A stretch of DNA of 62,951 bases, counting the filler, from Salisapilia sapeloensis CBS 127946 (Eukaryota > Protista > Oomycota), in the NCBI GenBank assembly GCA_023334545.1. It is 9 parts of 9 records of this genome, joined end to end, with 100 filler letters (N's around TTAATTAATTAA, not from the genome) between each part and the next. Parts side by side here need not be neighbours in the genome. Positions count along the whole stretch, not along the records: positions 24,580 to 39,663 come from JAADVB010000375.1; 8 more parts are not named here. The stretch is one strand, 5' to 3'. A model generated the notes under the pieces. It saw only the letters and a list, made by a program, of their open reading frames with translations, did no database searches and was not told the DNA's origin. This document shows positions 24,580 through 39,663 of this stretch, piece after piece. Made by a program: the position numbers and the translations under genes. How positions within the stretch are numbered: the first letter of the stretch is position 1; each line of letters starts with the position of its first letter.

Positions 24580-24720
24580 GAAAGAGCACCATTCCTTCTC
24601 CACTAACACTGCAAATCCTCGTATCGTACGATAGTAAGGATCGAGCATCAACTGCGCCAAGGCTGTCAGCTGCGGCGTCCGATCCCATCCATCACTACAG
24701 TGCACGAGGACACTCGCACC
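24580..24720 (-). repeat. 141-bp inverted repeat, copy A (partner 39523-39663)
   Basis: Exact reverse complement; encodes GASVLVHCSDGWDRT...EKEWCSF (47 codons). Confidence 0.97.
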
Positions 24721-26460
24721 ATCTTCATGCAGCACTTCGGCAATATGCCTCGCTCCAGCGAGAATGCAGATGATATGCTTGAGCCAATTGGATGCATCCG
24801 GACTACCTTTAACATCACTATAACTCTCGTCGACAATGTTTGCTTTCAAAGTGTCGAAAGATTCTCGCATCTTATGGATGTTGGCGATATTCAGAAACGT
24901 GACACGAGCGTTGTCATAGTGCTGTGGGTTCTCGACGCCTTTACCTCGTAATCGGTTACCTCTCGTTGCAATCGGCTTCCTGGCGTCTACAATATGCAGC
25001 ACGGGAGCATGCTCACCGATGCGTGTTTCAGACGCCTCTCGATACGCCTGTAGAAGGCATCGATCTGCCTCGCATCGGTTACCAATGACTCCGTATTTTG
25101 GCTGACTGGACCTGACTAAGACGTTCTGGTGTGTCGGGTGTCTCCACACAGCGACTGGTAGTCTCGATCGTGATCGAAACTTGGCGGACTGGACGAACTC
25201 GTCTTCACTCAAGTGCGACGGCACGATGACGAACTCGGGGTAAGACGGGCAGAAGCGATACTTTCGATTCCGATACAAGCGCCAGTATCCTTGGTCGGAT
25301 GGAGAGACGAGTCTCCGAGAGCTATCGCTTGCTTCTGTCGAGGGAGGTAGGAAGCCTAGGCGTCTGTACTCGGATACGGGATGGAAGAGATGCCACCCGT
25401 TTTCATTTCGACCGTGCGGGTCTTCCCGTGCTTGCATCTTGGCAGCATGATGATCAAAGGCAAAGAGAGCATCAGGTGCCGTGGGTGGCATCATCCTGAG
25501 CGCTAAGAAGTTCACCCAACGCATATCTGGCGCAGTAGCGAACCGTCGACCGAGGACGTTGCCTTCACGATCACTGGAGAAAGCTTCATGCATCGCTAGA
25601 CGAAGCGTACGGATGGTTTTCGCTTCCACAACAACAACAAGACCTTCACGCTTGACACTGTCGATCGTCGCGATCGGGAGTTGGAAGGCACGATTTTCAT
25701 GGCTAGAATGTTGCGGTGTGAAAATGAGACGATAGTTGGTGATCCGAAGTGTCCCGTTGACACCAATGTCTCCGGTGGAAGCTCGGACGGTAATAGATAC
25801 TCGATGAATAAGCTGCGTTTCGTCCTCTCCTTCTAATAGCTCCACTTCTTTAATGGTTTCTCGTGAACTAGAAGGTGAGATACTCGAGCTTGAGGACGAG
25901 ACCAAGTCTGAGTTGGGTACGTCGGCGTCGGAAAACGTGGCCGAACGAATGCAACTACTGGTTAGCTTGTCTGACGTGATGGTCGCGTGCATGCTTTCTA
26001 AAGCAGCTAGAAACTTGGCTCGTTCTTCCGTGCTTTCGAATGAAATTTTCTCGCGCTTGCTCTCTTTATTTACACGAAGCTGGACACTAGACGTCGAATA
26101 CGGACGAGCGACTACTTGTTCACAAGGATAATGTCTACACGCTTTGGTCTTCGAGATGAGTGTAAGAAGTCTTGTCTGAGTGTCCAATTGCACACACATG
26201 TTGGATGTCTTCTTGGTCTCGAGTCGAAGAGATAGATGACTCTTTCTGGCATGGAACGTCACGACTTGCGAGGTATCGGCTGGTGCTGTGTTTGACAAGT
26301 ACGCGTCGTTCTTACTAGCTGCAATCTGACGTTGGCTGTAGCCGGCGAGTAGATCATGTAACTCAGCTGAACTCTGTAAAAGAGGCTGCGTACTATCACA
26401 GCTGCGGCGACGTCCTTGAAGTAGGTAAGAGGAGCTCATGGAGCGCATAGTGGCGCTCAT
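24580..26460 (-). CDS. Myotubularin-family phosphoinositide 3-phosphatase A, 3'-truncated by linker
   Basis: GRAM-like GTLRITNYRLIF, RSRSRLP, IVDAR, active site VLVHCSDGWDRT and LVEKEWCSF. Confidence 0.95.
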
Positions 26461-26748
26461 GGGAAGCGCAGTGTGGTGAAGTAGACTTTTGGCAAAGTGC
26501 CTCCTGGAACGTTACCAGTCGCGAATATCGAAAGCTACGATGGTACGAAGAAAGAGAGAGAATATGGAAGGCGGAAGAGAAGGTGGTAGTAGAATAGGAG
26601 CTAAGGTCGGATAGAAAGTTAGTCGGACTGAAAGTTACACTTTTGAATCCTCCTTTCTTCCGCAAATCGACGATTTGACGCAAGTAGCCGCGACTGTCGC
26701 TGCTGAAAGCTTAGTCTCGGTTTACCTCAGGAAGTAATTGGAGTGTAA

Positions 26749-27790
26749 CTACGGGCTTTGTGGAGATGAGTTCTCGACATCAGTCGAGTATCGCAAAAAT
26801 TGGTGTAACTGATCATCTTTTATGATATAGCCTTCATCTCTTCTATCCACCGACACGTATGGTGGAACAAAAGAAGATTTAGAAGCGAAGAGAGAGTCCA
26901 ACAGTATCTGTGATAGTGCTAGCAAAAGTGCATGCTGTGAAGGTGGAACGAAGGGTCTGACGATACAAATCGTATCTAGATACAAGATACTTTATCATCG
27001 ATTGGTCTCATGACTGTATCAACATGAAAGTGGTAGGCAGATAGACGAATGAAGAATAGACAAATGGGCATTTGGACTTGTCAATGCTACTAATGATCGA
27101 GTATCGTTCGCGGATTGATTCGTATTATGTGTGGTATCCCACCACCCATAAAGATAAAAATCAATTCACGTCCGAGACTGAACGTCTCAAAAGCTATAGC
27201 TATACTGACACTCGATACTCTTTCTCAACGTACAAGAGACACTTTTCCAACAGCAGGATACAAGATCGAAATATATGGAAATTACGAGCAAAAGTATACA
27301 TCAGAATGATACGTCGTTGTAAAAGATAAAGGCATGGACGAAGACGGTATCAACAAGCATATATCAGGATACCCAAAGGGTCATTCAAGCTTTCCATACC
27401 ACACAGGCTATTTTGGTGGTAAGAGGATTGAGATCGCGATGCAAGGTTCAAGTGAGGATCTACTTGGAATAGAAAGATTGGCATTGGAAATCTCTCTCGC
27501 ATTCACAAGCTGTGGGATTGAATCGAAAGAGTGCTTTATCGCCTCTCGCGCGATAAAGGTTCGTGGTCTCAGTTTTGCCCATCTCAATCACATGATACCA
27601 ATAGCTGTAGATGGCAGAGCATTCGATAGAAAAGGTACGAGTGCCTTCAAACTCACTGATCAAGTATGGTAACCTAGATAACAAATCGCACACTCATCGC
27701 GAGCGCATCCAAAGCAATGCCAACACCAGTATTAAGCAATTCTCGCGAAAACTCTCTTCCGCCACTGCAACCAAAGGCAGAGCTTTATTG
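26749..27790 (-). CDS. Possible multi-exon hypothetical gene
   Basis: Short minus-strand ORFs (27460-27693, 26749-26985) with intron-like spacers. No family, and the strand is uncertain. Confidence 0.2.
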
Positions 27791-27851
27791 GATTCGTTCA
27801 AGGCCGTGGTTTCTACCGTAAAAAAGTATTCGTCCTACCCTTTTATTCGTC

Positions 27852-30800
27852 TCATTGCGCCGTCAAAAAGCTGCGTATGGTCGTTCGGAACTGGCCCAAT
27901 CTCTGTGTAAACTTGTCTCGGTTCGCCGCCTCGAGCGTCGGCATGACATCGCTGAAAAGTAATTTAAACGCATCATCAATCTTCTGCTGATTTTCGCCTG
28001 ATTGAGATGCTTTCAACGACTGCTGGTACGAGTTGAGTGCTTCTTCACTGCACAACGTCAAGCTCAAGATCGGTCTCGACAGCGCCCACTGCGACGTCGC
28101 TTCGCCATAGATGAGAACGTCCAAGAGTGCCGACAAAAGCATAGACCACATGTTTGGGTTCGCCTGGACGTGTGCCATCAGCGCCAGTTTCACCGGCGTG
28201 TCTCTCTTCTTCTTCATCTCATGATAGTACAACGCCGCTAAATGGTCCACGGCCGTGGCACATTGTGCTGCGATGCTTAAATCATGAGAGTTAATGCCTT
28301 CATGCAACGACTGGACGAGTTGCGTGAAGATCGCGTCGTCTAGCGCGACGACAGACGCAATTTGATTGCGGAAGAGGATCTCGAGGAAAAAGTAATACGC
28401 GTTCTTGACCTTCGGGTACGTCATCAAGTCATCGTGCGGGATGTTCAGCACGAGTTGGAACGCGACTTCCAACGCTGCATCAAGTGACTCGTCATTATAC
28501 AGCTTGAAGACACCAAAGTTCACGTAGTTGCCACCAATCGCTCGGTACAAAATGCCAAGACACAAGGAGATACCCTTGTACTTTTCTCCATACGGATTCT
28601 TACCCACCTGCACTTGCTGCAGGCGTCGACCGTATGCGACGACGACACGACTGAGTTCTCGAAAGAGCAGGATGCCGTTCGCTGAGCTCTGGTCGAACAT
28701 GACGCGCTGCGCTTTATTGTACGCGAGCTCCTGGAGGAACTTGAGAAGCGCAGTCATGGCTGCAGGACTATCATACAGCTGCTCTGCTGCTCTTACAAAG
28801 ACAGGAAAGTAGGTCGGATAGAGAAAGTCAAAGATGCAGCTAAACGTCCGACGGTTGTGCGTCTGTTGGACGACGCCTCGCAAGTCTCGGCAGACGCCAA
28901 TGACCGCGTCTTTCACCTCTGGCAGTCGGAAGTTCATCGTATTCATGAGCTTGTTCAAGACGTCTTCAAAGGGAGCCATGAACCGTTCAAAGCGTTCACT
29001 CGACTCGTCGAAGGCTGTCGTGAACAAGAGACGAGCAATCGTCATGTGGAACGTCGTACGGTGTCTTGTATTCACCGCAAGCGCCAGGAATGGGAATTCG
29101 TCTTCCGTGTGGTGTCCCAAGAGGTATTGTACGGTCTCCAAGCCAAGCAGTAGCTTGCCTGTGGAGTATCCAGACGCAACTTCAAAGAAGAGGTTGAGCG
29201 TCCGTTGGACAACGGCCTCTTCTTCTCCCCAAAACTTGAGGTTATTCCCGATCTTGGTCACAATCATATTCACGACGTAGATGTGATCACCCAGACCCAT
29301 GCGATCGAACATGCGTTGATACGCCCTCGCTTTCCCCGACAACTGCTGGTCGCTCGGCGCAAGACTCGGTGATCCGGACTGCAATGCAGCGGATGGAGGC
29401 GGCGCTGACGGCATGCCGTGCTGCTCACCAATGTAACTCTTACGGAAACTGCTAAAGTAGTATAATAAGGCAACTTCAAAGTGGACACTTGGCTTTTGCG
29501 ATCCGCCCGTCGTGATTAATCGATGCTCCGTCAGTTGCATCGCTCGAAAGACGCGCTGGGATAAGTCTGCGTCGACTAGTTCATCGCCTTCTTGCGCCGT
29601 GTTCGAGTACGTCTGTCCGCCGATGACAGCACCAACGAAGTAGCAGAGCCACGCGAGCTGCATCTCCATGCTTTCAAACTGTTCCGGTGACGCGATGCCG
29701 TCCCGTCCGCTCTGTTCAATCTGACTCCATGCCTCGGCATACCTGTTCAAGATTGGATCCATGACACTGATAAAGTAGTCTGCAGTCGATCGGTAGTTGA
29801 AGTGGCAGAGCGTCGGCAGTTTCTCCAGCTGCTCATACAACGTTCCTTCCTCGTCTAGAGGGTTATCCAGCGCTCCGTCGTTTGCACATTGGTCGGCAGA
29901 GTCCAGTCGAGACTGGACGTATGCCTGGAGGATGTGCGGAACACTCGTATCCAGGAAGGAAGTCGAAACGGGAGAGCTCGATAGTGTGTCCATGCGAACG
30001 TACGGCAAGGCAGCGACGAGTCGAGCCCATAGCGCGAGCAAGTAGTGGGCCGAATTGGCCGACCATTGCCACTGTCGGAAGGATTTGACGGTAAAGTCCG
30101 GCACGAGGTCCATCCAGTCTCGAAAGCTCTCGGCTTTCATCAGCTCTGACAGCTGAAAGTTCGATTTGAGTCTTCCTAAGAGCCGACAGAACTCGTGATA
30201 GTTCTGCTGGTCGCTGAGACCTTGCTGACTGCGTAGGATTTCACATGAACCGTCTAAGAGTCGAGCCAAGTAGGCTGCACGTTCCTTGTCAGGAGAAAAG
30301 AGGTTTCGACGCACGGATGCCATGAGCATGAGAGCCTCTAGACACCGACTGGCGGTCGGTGGCGAGTGGCTCTTGTAGTAGTCGAATAGTAGCTGCATGG
30401 TCTGCGCGTCCTGGATGACGTTCCGCCAGGACGTAGGCACTTGCAAAGACCCCATTTCCTCTGAGCTTTCGTCTGGATTTGTCCCGATGAAGTCAAACGA
30501 GAGGCACTTGATCAGTAGACCGAGCGCTTGGTCGCCCATGCGATCTTCCTGTTCGGCCGTGGCACCTGTGACGCTATGCATGTGCAGCTGACGGAGGGTG
30601 GAGAGGGATAGCTGGAAGATGCGGAAGAGCGCTTCTTCTCGGAACGAGACGGCAATCTTCCGATGGAAGGTGATATTACGGCCGGCAACGGGCAAATTCA
30701 TTTCGGTTACAAGTTCATGGAGGATCTGGAGGCCAATGATACAATGATCGACCGTCGCTTGCAAGAACTTTGTGACTTCATTCACGATTTCTCGATGCTG

Positions 30801-31238
30801 TTCATCGTCGAACCAACCGTACTTTGTTAATCGACAGACCATTTGGATCAATGCAGTCGTCACGAACTTTTCTAGATTCGGACCTTTTTGAGCCAAATAC
30901 CCCAAGACGTAGTTACCTAGTAGATAAGCAAATGCATGTTAGTGATGCTATAGATTTATGGATGGTACGATGCTAAAAGGCGTACGGATGTCGATACGCT
31001 GTGGAGGCGTAAAGTTGTTCCAGTGGGTTGTGATGAGTTTCGTGAGACTAGTGCTAGCAACGAGTAGAGCATAGGGCGAAGAGGAGTTGTCGAGGACATA
31101 TTGGCATTGCGGAATGTACTCTGCAGAGCTCTGTAGGATCAGCACAGACTGCTGCGCACGCGCTCGTTCGGCTTCATTCGTGCATGTATACAGCGCTTCA
31201 CATAGCTGTTCCAAGTTGCGAAACTCTGTCGTGTCCAT
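27852..31238 (-). CDS. XPO7: Exportin-7/RanBP16, 2 exons
   Basis: LEQLCEALY...AQQ N-terminus. Intron 30917-30985 joins to RNYVLGYL...RLTKYGWFD. HEFCRLLGRLKSNFQLSEL, KYKGI...GNYVNFGVFKLY and NRDKFTQRL motifs. Confidence 0.96.
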
Positions 31239-31832
31239 CCTGTCGTCTTTCTACGATATCCAGACAAAAATGATCTCGTGAGCGTGTGGATGCTAACAAC
31301 ACGTTTTTCTGGCAGTTCGTTTCAAAAGCAAGTGACAATGCGAATCGATCTACGAGATGCCACTTGTCTACGCGAACGTCTTGATGATTAGATTATTGGA
31401 GGTAAAGAGGAATCGTATTGACTGCCAAGGAAGGGAGCGATGGAAGAGCAGATTCGACCACCAAACGCACAAGCTCGTTTTGTTTCGCTCGCTTCTTTGG
31501 TTTCAAATATGCGTAAATTTAGGTACAGACTAATTATACTATGCTAAAGAGGATAGGTCGGCGTAGGTTTAGATGCGGAACCTCCGTCTGACGTGGTGCG
31601 TTCCAGTAGTTAGGACACATCGAGCTCGTATACTTCGATGTATAAGAGTCTGGATTGACTTAGATGCTAGCTGTATGCTTTCCTCATCGAGAGTGGCGTT
31701 GTTGTAGGATAGTACGAGTGACGAGCAGTCGGTCATGATACGAAGGGGCGTGTATACAAAAGCGTAGTGTAAGGATGCTGGGAAGAGTAGGAGCTATATT
31801 GACGGAAATGGAAGCTAGCTACGACATGTGGA

Positions 31833-32476
31833 TTATGCGCCGCTGTTGTCGGGATTCGTGCGTTCTTGCTCTTCCATCCAGCGATAGGACGGGAGACGGT
31901 TGTCATCTTCGTCGAATTGACAGTCGCGATTGAGGCAGACCCAGATGAGACGCAATGTCGATTGCTTGACACCATCGTGCGAGCGGATAAAGGCTGCGCC
32001 TTGGTGGTCGCACATAGGGCATTGGACATCCATGTCACGTTGGAGCGTCGGGTCATCGATCACATCTGCTGGAATGACATCCAACTGCACTCTAAAAAGA
32101 CATAAGTGCGATGCAAAGAGGATGCTATCAAGCGGTGTACCTCGTGTCCTTGACTAATTCATTGACATAAATACAGTTCTCATCGACTTCCTCTGCCTGT
32201 CCACAGTTTCGGCAGCGAAACATGAGTCTCCTAGCTTCACGGTCTTGACTCGGATACAGCATGTTATTGCTATCATGAAAAAAATAACAAGGTCAGTCGA
32301 TTGTTTGGCTATGCACTGCACATCCATTGCTCTCCCATTTCTTTACGTCTTTACATCAGACAATAAAAATGGTATCATTAAACACAGCGGTCTCTTCCGA
32401 CTATTTTACAGGAGTTAATATCCATATCAATCACGTACCACTCGCGGCAAAAGCGCATTCCTGCCGTCGACGACAT
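31833..32476 (-). CDS. RPB9: RNA polymerase II subunit RPB9, 3 exons
   Basis: Spliced product MSSTAGMRFCRECNNMLYP...FRCRNC...DPTLQR...CPMC...LIWVCLNRDC has two Zn ribbons. Intron 1 is 32270-32438. Confidence 0.92.
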
Positions 32477-32685
32477 CCTGTCGTGCGTTCTATCGATATG
32501 TGCTCCTAGCTGTCCTCAGCAGCATACAAACATCAAGTCTATTTAATTCGCATTTAATTGAAATCGGTAACCATACCGAAAGCAAGTTCTTTATATCGCA
32601 CTTGATCGCACCAAACGACATCCGTCCTTCTACCGATCGAACGGATTAGCGCCGCCATCGACCTCTTGGCAAGTGTCCTCTAGAT

Positions 32686-34416
32686 ATGGAGCAATTTCGG
32701 ATGTTAGAAAAAGGCGACTTCGACACGTCAAACGGCCGTGAAAGCCGTAATATTGGTTCCCAATTCAGTACGAACGAGAACTCGCCATTACTGCCAGAAG
32801 GTCGAATCGCTCTCAACTATAACTCCGACTCGGCCATGTATGACCAGGAAAGCCCAAGATCACGTCGAGGATATTATGCCACTGGCCAGTATTATGGTGA
32901 AGGTTCCAGTGGAGATGAAAGTGATGACATGCAGGATCTACTGCCAATGACGTACTCTCAGCCGACCATCAGTGGCCGTGCGAGTGGCAAGACCGGTGCG
33001 TCGAAGGATTCATGGAAATCGAAGAATAAGCGAGACGTATCCATTTATTAACAAACTTGCTTTGCATAGACTTATCTATAAAGTAGAATTCGACGCCATC
33101 GAAGCAGCAGATTGTCAATCGATTCACAAGGCGATCACGTATGCGTACAATCAAGAAACGATTCCGAGTACGTCCTATAACTTGTTATCCTAGTATTCCA
33201 TCTAAGATACTTATATATGTATAAAAGGAACCGCCAAGCTTTCAGAAACTTCGCGTGTCAGCGTACTGTATCTCGGATCAATTGCAGCTCTTCAAACTCC
33301 TCAAATGGCTTAATCGAGTCGATTCGGGTCAATTGCCTGGAGGTGAACTCAATCCGAACGGGTGGACGCACAAGATGTACATGGGTGCCATCCATTCGAC
33401 TTGTGTCCCAGCAAGTGAGCATAGCTACAGGTACTTTTATGCCCGCACGACTGTTTCGAAAAAGTACTGAGAGATAGTAGTGACGGGAACATGATCCCGA
33501 TCGAGTACAAGCAAAAGGACGTCTTCTACTTTGCGTATGTTTTCGATACATTACGAAACGACACGACGAAGAGGAATTAAAGTGATGTATAGGACGGGAT
33601 GCATTGTCTTTTGGGGCTTGACCAGAACGGAGGAGCAGGCTCACGTGACTGCGTTAGAAACCTTTGTCATTGGGCGTGTGAAGCAAATGGAAGTGGAGGA
33701 CATGGACTATGTCTATGGGGAAGCGAGCAAGTAAATGCTGTCTGTAGTGTGCCTTATATTTCGTATTGACGTGGAAATAGAGTGGTGAATGATGCGATCA
33801 CGCTGAGTAGTACGCGTGCATCGGAGAAGCTAGCTATTGCGTTCGCGATGGCTCAGTCGTCCAAATTGGACGTGTTTGAAGAGCGTGTGGAAGAAACGAT
33901 TCGTGAGACTAAGCACATTCCACAGAATCTCGCGAGCACTGGATCGATTCAGTACAGTCAAGGCGACATTTCGAAGCTCATCGGTCGTCTCTTTATTGAA
34001 GTATATCTTGAGTAAAATCGTCTAGAAAGCATATACTCATGTATGACTAGCGTACGGATGTGAATTTGAACTCAGATATGTTGGATGAGCCGGATTTCTT
34101 CTGGGAAGATGACGAGTACGAGCCTTTGTATCGTAAGATGATGAAGTATTTGGATGTGGACAATCGTGTCCAGATTCTTAACACTCGTCTCGATATTCTT
34201 CGCGAATTGTACGTTGGTTTATATCTAGTAGAAGCAAAGAGAGTACTGATGGAATGTAGGTTGGATGTGCTGAGTCAACAATTGGCGCATCAACATGACA
34301 CCAAGCTCGAGTGGATTGTCATTTGGTTGATCGTGGCCGAAGTCGCGGTCCAAGTCGTGTGGAATATACTGATCAAAGACATCCTTGGCTTCTTCCCACA
34401 TTCGTACACGGACTAG
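32686..34416 (+). CDS. RMD1: RMD1/DUF155 family protein, multi-exon
   Basis: RVSAYC, GCIVFWG, EKLAIAFAMAQSSKLDVFE, NLNSDMLDEPDFFWE, YLDVDNRVQILNTRLD and KLEWIVIWLI. Confidence 0.9.
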
Positions 34417-34448
34417 AAGATTGCAAAAAGATAATCCATTTGTCATTG

Positions 34449-35688
34449 CTACCTTTCATTTCGTCTCGATCTCGACTTGTTCGTCCGGTGGATGCGCATG
34501 CTAGCTGTAGCTCTTCGCACTTGTCGCTGCATACGATGTGATCCGACTGCACTGTGCTTGTTGGCATCTTGAACTGGTCGATGCACTTTTCGACAGACGT
34601 ATCCACGCGCGATCTGTTGGATTTGAACAGCAGCGTCATGACGCTGTCGTTCAGCTTTCTCTAGCTCCTCTCTCTCGATTTGTGCTTGACGCAGCTTGCG
34701 ACGATAATGCAGCTCTCGTTTTGCTCGCATCCGGAGAATGTACTTCTTGCCTACTTGCTGCAAGATGTGAGCGGTTTGAACGAGACGTTCCATCTAGACT
34801 AAAGTTAGTTGGGTAAGACCGACATATATGCTTCTATAAGCTACCTTTTTGTGCTCTAGCACAGCTTTGGCACGAACGACTTGCAAGTGACGACGTGCCG
34901 TGTACTGGATTCGAATGGCTGCATCGGTTTCCAAGACGTAGCGTTCATGTCGAAGGCGCTGTCGTGTTTTACGACCTCGAACGAGCGCTTGGATTGCGGA
35001 GGCGGATTGATGGCGCTTCTTCATAACCATTCGACGCTGATCTCTTGCTTCACGCCGTAGTAACTTTTCTGCATCAGCTCGCTATGCACGACAGTAGCAA
35101 TGAGTAAAGAGGATGTGAATCAATAAATGCAGTAATCTACCTTTTGTAGCTCATTACATCGAATGCGCATTTGCTCTGTTCGCAGCTCTACTTTTCGCTG
35201 CCAGCTCTCTGCTCGTTGCTTACTAGTTTCGATTCATACGATCGTCAGCATTTGCACAGGAACATAAGATGTCACGGTAATGCTATTATACCTCTTGTCG
35301 ATGGAAGTGAGACTGGTATCCTCGTACATGCCCGTGATAAAGTCTTTTGTGAAGCCACTCGGTCGAGCATGTTTGGGACAGCTCAATGCTACATCTCTAA
35401 TGTCTAAGTAGCGTCCATATTCGAACCTGTACATGCAAAGGATTGTCAATTAGGATGTTATGATGACAAAAGATGATGATCCACTTGCCCAGTTGTGGTC
35501 CGGTAGAACGGATTTCCAGGTTTCCGAAGCATTTCTATCTTGGAGAGAGAATGTGGAGCTCTCGGTGCATGACCATTTTCCGGTAACGATAGTCGTGGGA
35601 GATGTATTTGCTGCGACGATGGTTTGTGCGCAGCCCGTGTCTGTGCCGGTGTCGGCGATGACAGCCCATAGCTATTTAACGACAACAT
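34449..35688 (-). CDS. IQ-motif protein, multi-exon
   Basis: IQ motifs ASAIQALVRGRKTR, AIRIQYTARRH and AVQIQQIARGYVCR in collinear ORFs. The ends are uncertain. Confidence 0.55.
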
Positions 35689-35962
35689 GGTAACGAGCTC
35701 AATATCAAAAGTGTAAATCCCTTGTCATGCAAGTGACCTATGATTTCGTTCTTATCCTACTTGTGCCTCTAGCTCTGGTACTGCCCTCTACGGTCTACCT
35801 CGTACGATCAACTAAAAATACTTTGTGCCGGGTCTGATTTTGTACCTGATCTACAAAATTGGCACCACATCCACCTTCAAAATCACATCAGGTTGAAGTT
35901 TGTCTTAGAAAATTGCGTTCATTGACCTCGTCGCTGCGATCGAAAGCAGAACCACGAATGAT

Positions 35963-37066
35963 ATGCGCCGCCAAAGACTTGGGCGATCTTTACTAGATAT
36001 ATGGCGTGCTTCCAGACGCCCACACATGTGTATAAGGAGCCATAGTACCCAGAAAGTGTGTGATGAGATGCATTCGATTTGGAAAGAACGTATGACACCA
36101 GAAACTGCGCAAGAACTCATGACGAATGGGTATGCTGTACTACATAATGTTTTTCCAGGCAAATACACACAGCAATTGCGTCAGGAGATCGACGCATTGA
36201 ATCAAGAGGACCAAATGTACTTGAATTCGACGCACATTGTTACTCCTTCTTCCAGTAACACCATGGAGACGACGTTATTGGAGAAAGAACATATCTACGA
36301 AGCTGAATTAGGGATGGAAGATGTGCGGAAGCGAGTGCCATTGCTCGGCCAGTTCTTTGAAAACCAGTTAATGGCAACGCCATTAGAAGAGCAATTACCA
36401 TCATGGCTTCAGCTGCATGGGAGTAGTGTCAAACTCCAGTATAATGAAGGCAATGGCGGTTGCTTCCCCATGCACTTTGATTCGTATGGGGACGGCAGTG
36501 ATACAAAATGCGTGACAGCGATTCTGTATCTCACAGACAATTGGACGGATGGGGATGGCGGTGAGCTCGTGCTCTATCCCTTCCCAAAAGACGAAAAGGT
36601 ACTTGTCGCACCAAAGGCAGGTACCGTTGCCCTGTTTTCGTCACAGCAAATGCTCCACCGTGTTCTTCCCTCCCACAAGCCGCGGTATGCCTTAACGACG
36701 TGGATGTACAATACGCCGACAAGTGATATGCAGCAACATCGCATACGGTACTATCAAGCTCGGCCAGCTCATTCAGGCTCAAGCTTGGATCAGATGATGG
36801 CAAAGATCGTACACTCATCGTTCCGGAGACATTTGGCAAAACTCGTCTACAAGGATGAATGGAAACTCTCTTTACAAGAATCCCATCGACTAAACGCGGC
36901 CTTTGACGACTACTTGGCACGTCACGCGCGTGAGATGGGTACGATCGAAGCCGCAACGCACCAGATGCTCTCGACCTTTGTCGAAAAGGACTCGAATCTC
37001 CCGTCTACGCCGTCGGACCTCGTGACAGCTCTTCACGCCTCGCAGGCGTCCGTGCGCTGGTTTTAA
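35963..37066 (+). CDS. 2OG-Fe(II) dioxygenase (prolyl-hydroxylase-like)
   Basis: FPMHFD (HxD), TAILYL, WTDGDGGELVLY, LHRVLPS and RYALTTW. The true start may be a downstream ATG. Confidence 0.88.
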   Translation: MRRQRLGRSLLDIWRASRRPHMCIRSHSTQKVCDEMHSIWKERMTPETAQELMTNGYAVLHNVFPGKYTQQLRQEIDALNQEDQMYLNSTHIVTPSSSNTMETTLLEKEHIYEAELGMEDVRKRVPLLGQFFENQLMATPLEEQLPSWLQLHGSSVKLQYNEGNGGCFPMHFDSYGDGSDTKCVTAILYLTDNWTDGDGGELVLYPFPKDEKVLVAPKAGTVALFSSQQMLHRVLPSHKPRYALTTWMYNTPTSDMQQHRIRYYQARPAHSGSSLDQMMAKIVHSSFRRHLAKLVYKDEWKLSLQESHRLNAAFDDYLARHAREMGTIEAATHQMLSTFVEKDSNLPSTPSDLVTALHASQASVRWF

Positions 37067-37293
37067 AACAATTAACGGCTAGAGTGGCTGCCGAAAATGT
37101 CTTTGACGTTGTGTCGTACCGTTGTGTGTCCTCTCTTGTTGTTTGTATAGTCGGCAGCTGCCCGAGACATAGGCGAGCCAGTACTCGGACTTGGCAGACC
37201 GAAAAAACTGGCTTCGACTGGGAGCCGCAAACTCGTTCGAGCACCCGCTTTCGTTCCTTGTACGAAACACAGGTAGGTACGTGTGACAGATAG

Positions 37294-39663
37294 ATGGAGA
37301 GTCAAGAGCAGGACCGACTCGCATCCTCGACGTCATCTTTGAATCGGAATGAGTACTCGAGTCAGGAACAGGCCATGGACATGGCCACGTTTGATAAATT
37401 GATGAAAGTGGAACAGAATTTATTCAATGCTGGACAAGCGACGTTGGAGGCGTGGAAGATTATCGGGAGGAACCCGTCTGAGGTGGAAGGTGGGGAACAG
37501 GAGCCCGTCGCGCCGTCCTCTGCGAGCGACGCTGGCGATGTCTCAACGAACAAAGCCAATGCAGTCGGTAGATCCAACTCGACAGCAGGCGCGTCGGTCT
37601 CCTCTTCTTCGCCCAAGACGACGAGGGATCCCCCACCGAGAGCCGATACTGGGCGAAATTCGCTGGGAGCTTACAGCGGGAAGAAGAACACTGGGTCGTC
37701 TGCCTCGACCTCAAACGTGTTCGAGCGGAACAACCTTGCAGACTACAAAGCCGATGGTCTAGCGTCCAATGTCGATCCTTGGCAGTCGGCTCCGAACGTG
37801 TTGGCTGAAAATGGTCGCTCGAGGTCTTCCCACAATGTCTTTGGTTTCACGAAAGACCATCCTCCCCAGTCCGACGTGACGCTATTCACGTTTACAGTCA
37901 AGAAGAATGACAACGTCTTGCGGATGGGTGGCAAGCGAGCCTCTTTACAGCTACAAGTCGATGTCGAGCAGCGAACGCTGAGCTTCCTCTCTCCTCACGA
38001 TAGTCGTGAAAGCTTTTCCTGTGCAGCCGTGACGGCGAAACCGTACTCCAAACTCGGTATGCAGCTTAAGATTCAGATGAACTCGACGGCGACGACCAAG
38101 AAGATTTTGTTTTTAAGCAACGAAGACCGGTCGAATTTCTTACAAGCGTTAGAGGATGGTAAAGTCATGTACAAAAAGAGTAGTATGTCCATTCCTGTCG
38201 CCAAGACACCTGGTGGTGCATCCCAGGACGCATCGACACCTCTGCCTGCAGGTCGATCCACCTCTACGACGAGTTACGAAACGGAGCCGCGGGAACACAG
38301 CTCGACCTCGTACCAGCGCTCGACAGACGACAGTGCGATCGTCTTGAGCGAGAACGCCAAGTCGCATATTCGAGGCTCTTTATCGAACGATCAGTTTGCG
38401 TCCTTACCAGGTGAAAATGCGCTTGAGTACGTCCAGCGCGTGACGAACATGGTTGCCATGTCGAAGAAAGATCTGTCTGTCCAAGGCGTTTTGAAAATCA
38501 CGTCCTACCGTATCACATTCACACCGTACGATTCATCTTGGAAAGTCGGTTCGTTCGAAGTCCCTTTAGCGACCATCGACGTCATTACGCGCGAAGGGTT
38601 GATGCTCCACATACAGTGCAAGGACCTTCGGACGATCCAATTGTCCATGCACGACGCGTACTCTCGTAAGAAGAACTACGACCAACTGCCTTCGACACCA
38701 GACTTTCGATGGCTCAACCTGCTCATGCTTCGTATGAAACCTCCGAACATGATCGGTGCACTCTTTGCGTTCGACTATCATACGGAAAAGAGCAAGGAGC
38801 AAGATCATCCGAAGGAGAATGGGTGGTATCTGTATTCTCCAGTGGCAGAGTACCAACGTCTTGGCTTTCTCAAGTCGAGTGACAGTCGATCGAAGAGCTC
38901 TCGAGAGCGTCGGAAGAACGGGAGTGAGTCAGGCGAGACGGTCGCGTGGCGTTTGCTCAAGAACTCCAAGTTCCGCTTCAGCCCGTCGTACCCGCAGCTC
39001 ATGGTCGTCCCGAGTATCATGACGGAAGACCAGCTAGTCCAGTCAGCTCGTTTCCGGTCGAGAGCGAGACTCCCGGTCGTCGTGTGGAGGCACCCGGTGA
39101 ACAAGAGTGTCCTCGCGCGGTCGAGTCAACCGAACTATGGTATGGCAGGCAATCGGTCGGAACCAGATCGACTGCTATTGCGCGCGTATCGAGATTCGGC
39201 ACAGGCGACGGGGATGGGTGTCCCGCCGCCGCTGCACATTATTGATGCTCGGAAACCGATTGCGACGAAAGGAAATCGACTGCGAGGTAAAGGTGTGGAG
39301 AACTCGCAGCACTATGACAACGCGACGATCGACTTTATGGGCATCGCGAACATCCACAAGATGCGCGAGAGTCTCGAGGCACTCAAGTCGCTCGTGAGTC
39401 CGAGTGGCGTCGAGGATGGAGATAAGAATTATCATCATCGACTGGAGAATACGCGATGGCTTAAGCACATTATGCGTGTCTTGTCTGGTGCGAGGCAAGT
39501 GGCCGAGTCGCTGCATGAGAAAGGTGCGAGTGTCCTCGTGCACTGTAGTGATGGATGGGATCGGACGCCGCAGCTGACAGCCTTGGCGCAGTTGATGCTC
39601 GATCCTTACTATCGTACGATACGAGGATTTGCAGTGTTAGTGGAGAAGGAATGGTGCTCTTTC
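37294..39663 (+). CDS. Myotubularin-family phosphatase B, 3'-truncated by linker
   Basis: GVLKITSYRITF, RSRARLP, IIDAR and VLVHCSDGWDRT. Confidence 0.95.
39523..39663 (+). repeat. 141-bp inverted repeat, copy B (partner 24580-24720)
   Basis: Exact match to the reverse complement of 24580-24720. Confidence 0.97.

Follow-up and report, generated by a model that had tools for sequence, protein, structure and literature searches.

Two myotubularin genes share an identical inverted tract

We analyzed contig JAADVB010000375.1 of the oomycete Salisapilia sapeloensis CBS 127946 (assembly GCA_023334545.1), which occupies positions 24580-39663 of the window, the 62,951-nucleotide stretch of joined genome parts along which all positions are counted here. 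The contig is 15084 nucleotides (nt) long, has 49% G+C and no N, and carries a myotubularin gene at each end, the two being directed outward. Paralog A (24580..26460, minus strand) is an intact, intron-free open reading frame (ORF) of 627 amino acids (aa), and paralog B (37294..39663, plus strand) is an intact, intron-free ORF of 790 aa; both are cut by the contig end. Matches to the family profile PF06602 (A, E-value 2.7e-88, 296.7 bits; B, E-value 4.5e-93, 312.4 bits; cut-off 25) confirmed the outward-facing gene pair that had been described in an earlier note made from this DNA. Owing to the contig ends, both ORFs stop at position 278 of the 352 in the profile, and their orthologues run on for approximately 360 highly conserved aa past this point. 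One borderline match to the GRAM profile was obtained per paralog; the scores are 23.5 and 21.5 bits, and the cut-off is 23.6.

The contig ends in an exact terminal inverted repeat of 141 nt. Its left arm (24580..24720, minus strand) comprises the last 47 visible codons of A, including the CSDGWDR catalytic loop, and its right arm (39523..39663, plus strand) comprises the last 47 visible codons of B. The repeat search returned inverted arms of 207 nt at 24580-24786 and 39457-39663 with 90% identity, and a base-by-base comparison showed that the outer 141 nt of these arms (24580-24720 vs 39523-39663) are 100% complementary. The tract breaks off abruptly: counted from the contig ends, nt 142, 144 and 145 are mismatched, and identity falls to approximately 68% over the next 66 nt. 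The catalytic CX5R loop, VHCSDGWDRT, lies within the identical tract and is intact in both A and B.

Codon-aware alignment of A and B revealed complete agreement over the last 47 codons, so that the reported lack of any difference over 47 codons, synonymous sites included, holds for 141 of 141 nt. Across the twelve 47-codon windows that precede the tract, amino acid identity was 0.19-0.81 and third-position identity was 0.23-0.57. Outside the tract, the same codon is used at 43% of conserved residues and the longest exact nucleotide run is 17. Given this level of same-codon use elsewhere, the probability that 47 conserved codons would all agree by chance is approximately 7e-18, and chance is therefore excluded. 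With 0 differences over approximately 32 synonymous sites, the synonymous divergence (dS) of the tract is below about 0.09; silent or third positions elsewhere are near saturation. The absence of synonymous differences between diverged paralogs requires recent sequence homogenization. The tract thus displays the hallmarks of conversion, namely a run free of synonymous differences beyond chance, saturated divergence beside it and an abrupt inner boundary.

The tract begins 7 codons ahead of the catalytic cysteine (GASVLVHCSDGWDRT...), and its start coincides with that of the family's best-conserved stretch, in which amino acid identity still amounts to 70-94% against proteins of animals, fungi and alveolates. 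The tract is directly preceded by a variable loop that contains an indel, and amino acid identity is 38% in the 47-codon window ahead of the tract. Within the tract, both copies read QLTALAQLML, vs QLVALAQLIL in the aligned sequences from Peronospora, Phytophthora, Plasmopara, Albugo and Pythium, with Saprolegnia and Achlya differing again. The T and M residues are common to A and B and are not found in the other aligned oomycetes, which is consistent with homogenization inside this genome. The G+C content at third codon positions was uninformative regarding the donor copy (tract, 0.57; A, 0.54; B, 0.64).

A second inverted pair, of 147 nt with 76% identity, was found at 39231-39377 and 24854-25000, where it covers the DARKPIATKGNRL.GKGVEN...ANIHKMRES block. 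We considered whether this pair might represent an older conversion tract and saw no sign of one; its same-codon use is 58%, and the pair represents ordinary coding homology.

A conserved oomycete myotubularin and a fast-diverged paralog

Upstream of the tract, the two proteins are clearly diverged, as had been claimed; BLASTP aligned them with 46% identity over 615 columns, and both peptides quoted in support of that claim were reproduced. Homology between them begins at residue 53 of A, which corresponds to residue 184 of B. The N-terminal motif of the family, MD.AT.DKL...AGQATL.AWK, is present in B and its orthologues and is missing from A (26101-26460, minus strand, vs 37294-37893, plus strand).

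The relatives of B are proteins of approximately 1150 aa with 57-67% identity from Peronospora, Phytophthora, Plasmopara, Albugo and Pythium; identity to the Saprolegnia and Achlya proteins is 42-43%. The sequence of B places it clearly among the orthologues of the conserved oomycete myotubularin (PF06602, a GRAM-like region and approximately 1150 aa, in Phytophthora, Peronospora, Albugo, Pythium and Saprolegnia), and A is a divergent member of the same clade. Paralog A has 41-51% identity to other oomycete myotubularins. Its top database matches are orthologues of the B type, at no more than 51%, and a search with residues 215-580 of A returned 216 matches, the best being Pythium oligandrum at 51%, among which there was no closer A-type orthologue. 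In the protein collection searched, which holds no close relative of the source organism, no match exceeded approximately 70% identity over most of the protein.

Trees were computed without the 47 shared residues. In these trees, B has an end branch of 0.3 and groups with Pythium sequences; A has an end branch of 1.6-1.9 and falls within the starred oomycete clade, and because of this long branch its exact place there was not settled. A may be either an ancient paralog or a lineage-specific copy that evolves fast. Its 627-codon ORF has stayed intact despite the divergence, suggesting that A is probably functional. If the 47 shared residues were included, the tract would mislead a phylogeny, which matters to builders of myotubularin trees.

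A pair of such paralogs occurs in Albugo laibachii too (P0015 and P0050, 53% identical). The N-termini of this pair have diverged, and the catalytic and C-terminal parts are well conserved, being roughly 85-90% similar by eye. The Albugo pair carries protein differences inside the region homologous to the tract, whereas the copies of S. sapeloensis are identical there even at silent sites. Paralog A has residues in common with the second Albugo copy, in NRCEADR and GVENP.HYDNAR. Because of these matches at some residues, the duplication may be old and shared with Albugo, although the tree does not settle this. A search for related loci in metagenome contigs, using the protein of the exportin gene XPO7 that lies between the two paralogs, gave 45 pattern matches, of which 0 were confirmed by tblastn.

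The contig ends probably reflect the assembler word size

The length of the shared ends, 141 nt, equals the largest default k of the assembler MEGAHIT, whose k list is 21, 29, 39, 59, 79, 99, 119 and 141 as quoted in the COBRA paper (PMC10914622). According to the same paper, contigs from MEGAHIT or metaSPAdes that are broken at repeats have shared ends of length maxK (PMC10914622). The contig described here resembles such maxK end overlaps in that the shared end is 141 nt and the contig halts at the first fully repeated k-mer, and its ends are reverse-complementary, as would be the case for a unique segment between inverted arms. An end overlap of this kind belongs to the assembly rather than to the organism. 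It accounts for where the contig ends lie and how long the shared ends are, and leaves the identity of the two genes there unexplained.

We modeled this situation with a toy edge-centric de Bruijn graph at k=141, composed of an outer flank, the reverse-complement tract, the contig interior, the tract and an outer flank. With the true tract set to 141, 201, 541 or 3141 nt, the interior unitig came out each time as exactly the 15084-nt contig. A unitig at k=141 must stop at the first fully shared 141-mer, that is, 141 nt past the last difference between the paralogs, and 141 nt is consequently a lower bound on the tract. The figure of 47 codons to the contig ends, given in the earlier note, is therefore not a biological length, given that it equals the default k and that the toy graph yields the same contig for any tract of at least 141 nt. 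That the identity extends as far as the contig end is forced by the assembly and is unremarkable in itself.

At either end, the contig enters the tract for a full k and no branch occurs, so that both paralog-specific sequences are connected to it. From this unitig logic, we infer that two tract copies flank the segment on one molecule. The earlier note had named assembly collapse, or a single shared downstream copy, as what might account for the pattern instead. Collapse does explain the contig ends, beyond which the arms are collapsed, and a single shared downstream copy was rejected as incompatible with both ends entering the tract for a full k unbranched.

Probable interlocus gene conversion between inverted paralogs

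The explanation that we consider likely is a joint one: A and B are real inverted paralogs that share a tract of at least 141 nt, recently homogenized by interlocus gene conversion, and the visible tract length and the contig ends were set by an assembler presumed to have used k=141. On this best explanation, the contig is a single-copy segment of approximately 14.8 kb that carries five or six housekeeping genes and separates the two arms of one inverted repeat in the oomycete nuclear genome. The earlier interpretation stands insofar as it held that diverged paralogs have been recently homogenized with no synonymous differences, for which conversion is the simplest cause, and it falls with respect to the 47-codon length; its proposal that the catalytic and C-terminal half is homogenized as a whole reaches beyond the visible tract.

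We infer gene conversion as the mechanism from the sequence pattern. In the proposed course of events, the arms would start inside two outward-facing myotubularin genes, probably old paralogs, the conserved B and the fast-diverged A, and a break in one copy would have been repaired with the other copy, at a distance of 14.8 kb, as the template (non-allelic gene conversion). The conversion may represent one recent event, or the tract may form the innermost part of a longer inverted duplication whose arms continue to homogenize each other. Heteroduplex extension would have halted where the similarity of the paralogs collapses, at the indel-bearing variable loop with its 38% amino acid identity. 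The simplest account of the inner edge is this drop in similarity, and a functional module boundary is not needed to explain it.

Two points weigh against this explanation. Across all myotubularins, no part is more conserved than the tract, where identity at the protein level says little and synonymous identity alone counts. In addition, a search for the contig that would continue the arms, made with the exact 33-nt contig end, gave 0 matches in the genome-contig and metagenome-contig collections, among which this assembly is not included.

A longer palindrome overlaps with the conversion explanation and differs from it solely in extent and persistence. Here the tract would mark only where an inverted segmental duplication of several kilobases begins on its inner side, with continuing arm-to-arm conversion as in the palindromes of sex chromosomes, and the arms would span the whole 3' third of both genes (approximately 360 more codons in the orthologues) and perhaps downstream genes as well. 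In the toy graph, any inverted repeat of 141 nt or more would leave a spacer contig exactly like the observed one, and the highly conserved sequence of approximately 360 aa that orthologues carry past the tract would be a good conversion substrate. However, the edge is very sharp and lacks any identity gradient, and one recent event fits at least as well. We therefore regard the longer palindrome as possible, and hold it only tentatively.

An artefact of assembly or library, in which one junction between a paralog and the tract is unreal through chimeric reads or over-aggressive graph simplification, and the 141-mer truly belongs to one gene, appears improbable. The repeat length equals an assembler parameter, which would favor an artefact. 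By contrast, both ends go a full k into the tract unbranched, for which (k+1)-mers across each junction are needed; bubble merging requires common start and end nodes, which the upstream sequences, approximately 68% identical, do not give; and both ORFs remain in frame across the junction.

Unlikely readings: inversion of the segment and nucleotide-level selection

The earlier note had further likened the locus to a eukaryotic shufflon. In such a switch, recurrent crossover would flip the 14.8-kb segment and recombine the N- and C-terminal halves as a regulated source of protein diversity. Bacterial shufflons and invertible hsdS-type systems, such as the R64 shufflon and the phase-variable type I restriction specificity genes, rely on a site-specific recombinase of their own, on short and defined recombination sites, of which there are often several, and on alternative halves with clear differences. 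The present locus is like these systems in its geometry, since inverted repeats inside two outward-facing genes could recombine the 5' and 3' gene halves upon inversion, and given that conversion and crossover have common intermediates, an occasional inversion is mechanistically possible. Unlike these systems, however, it shows no recombinase, no defined recombination sites and no differing halves in the scanned frames and the visible contig. Pfam searches of the end ORFs and of most intervening open frames of at least 55 aa detected no recombinase, integrase or transposase domain. Several short recombination sites were likewise not found in the contig: the sole inverted repeats are the two pairs of paralog homology, of which one is exact, and there are no direct repeats. 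The segment that would be flipped carries housekeeping genes (XPO7, an RPB9-like gene and RMD1), and since the visible parts that would be exchanged match exactly, inversion would not alter either protein within the visible region. Orientation isomers, for their part, are invisible in a collapsed assembly. With no recombinase domain, one exact repeat pair, no direct repeats and identical visible parts to exchange, the comparison to a shufflon finds no support, and we consider a regulated switch of this kind very unlikely.

An inversion would alter the proteins solely if the parts distal to the visible tract differ. Segments flanked by inverted repeats in other genomes show such inversion, and occasional homologous inversion of the present segment, mechanistically possible by analogy, would be ordinary inverted-repeat behavior. 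A long inverted repeat, together with recurrent homologous inversion and differing distal C-terminal parts, would make the locus a two-state domain-swapping system in a eukaryote, a combination to which we give very little credence. If it were true, inversion would swap the N-termini, the conserved motif of B vs the truncated end of A, between two different C-terminal tails.

The least probable alternative, which we find scarcely credible, is that nucleotide-level selection on an RNA structure or regulatory element in the catalytic-loop exon keeps the copies identical without recombination: the tract is indeed the most conserved part of the family, but an equally conserved stretch (codons 487-533 of A, 81% amino acid identity) has 58% same-codon use, the identity switches from 100% to 68% within three bases, and the copies share residues that are off the consensus of other Peronosporomycete sequences.

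Relation to known inverted paralogs

Interlocus, or ectopic, gene conversion and concerted evolution of inverted paralogs are established for the palindromes of the human Y chromosome and for the X-linked FLNA-EMD region with its flanking inverted repeats. The S. sapeloensis locus is like these cases in that two inverted copies surround a unique spacer, perfect identity including silent sites stands beside old divergence, and a crossover could in principle invert the spacer benignly. It is unlike them in the extent of the arms, which range from kilobases to megabases in those cases and are seen here only as at least 141 nt, and in the position of the inner arm boundary, which here lies inside the coding sequence of otherwise diverged paralogs.

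The case is one of ordinary concerted evolution between inverted paralogs, viewed through an assembly break. Two paralogs that lie 14.8 kb apart in inverted orientation and have been recently homogenized over the most conserved exon segment are of modest interest for oomycete genome dynamics, and the main value of the case is a methodological lesson on terminal repeats of length k. A terminal inverted or direct repeat that is exactly as long as a common assembler k is the signature of a contig break, and its length is a lower bound on that of the repeat. The earlier note mentions a second such arrangement in the window, which would fit a systematic property of the assembly. Common values of k are 141 for MEGAHIT and 127, 99, 77 or 55 for SPAdes.

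Genes between the arms

The genes with introns in this segment (XPO7, RMD1 and the RPB9-like gene) were searched as single exons, not as joined models. Scans of the contig for transfer RNAs, tandem repeats and direct repeats revealed nothing relevant: the contig lacks transfer RNAs, direct repeats and any tandem repeat of note. Among the intervening genes that had been named from the sequence, XPO7 and RMD1 were verified by Pfam, and RPB9 was seen by motif alone, with zero Pfam matches.

Next to paralog A, the 1.4 kb that separate it from XPO7 (26462-27859) form the most A+T-rich part of the contig, with 42-46% G+C. Open frames in this interval reach at most 120 aa (27310-27669, plus strand) and belong to no Pfam family; the interval may be intergenic or may contain an orphan gene. 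Exportin-7 (XPO7) follows at 27852..31250 on the minus strand, with a large exon at 27852-30905 matching TPR_XPO7 (PF25795) and an upstream exon at approximately 30951-31250 matching the importin-beta N-terminal domain (IBN_N).

An RPB9-like small zinc-ribbon gene with at least two exons lies at 31836..32342 on the minus strand and was recognized by eye from its CxxC motifs and an NMLYP-type N-terminus. Its open frames, searched exon by exon against Pfam, gave nothing at an E-value of 0.01 or below. The zinc-ribbon halves CRNC and CPMC are visible in this gene, which has at least one short intron; the first CxxC was not located.

In the interval from the RPB9-like gene to RMD1, two open frames, of 133 aa (32650-33048, plus strand) and 131 aa (33261-33653, minus strand), have no Pfam match, and the latter runs antisense to RMD1, whose probable 5' part it overlaps. 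RMD1/RMND1 (DUF155) occupies 33495..34413 on the plus strand with three exons, whose open frames span profile positions 2-52, 56-129 and 131-174. Two open frames at 34452..35081 on the minus strand have weak matches to the IQ calmodulin-binding motif, both under the Pfam cut-off. Directly upstream of paralog B, at 35963..37066 on the plus strand, Pfam identified a 2OG-Fe(II) oxygenase of 367 aa that is prolyl-4-hydroxylase-like.

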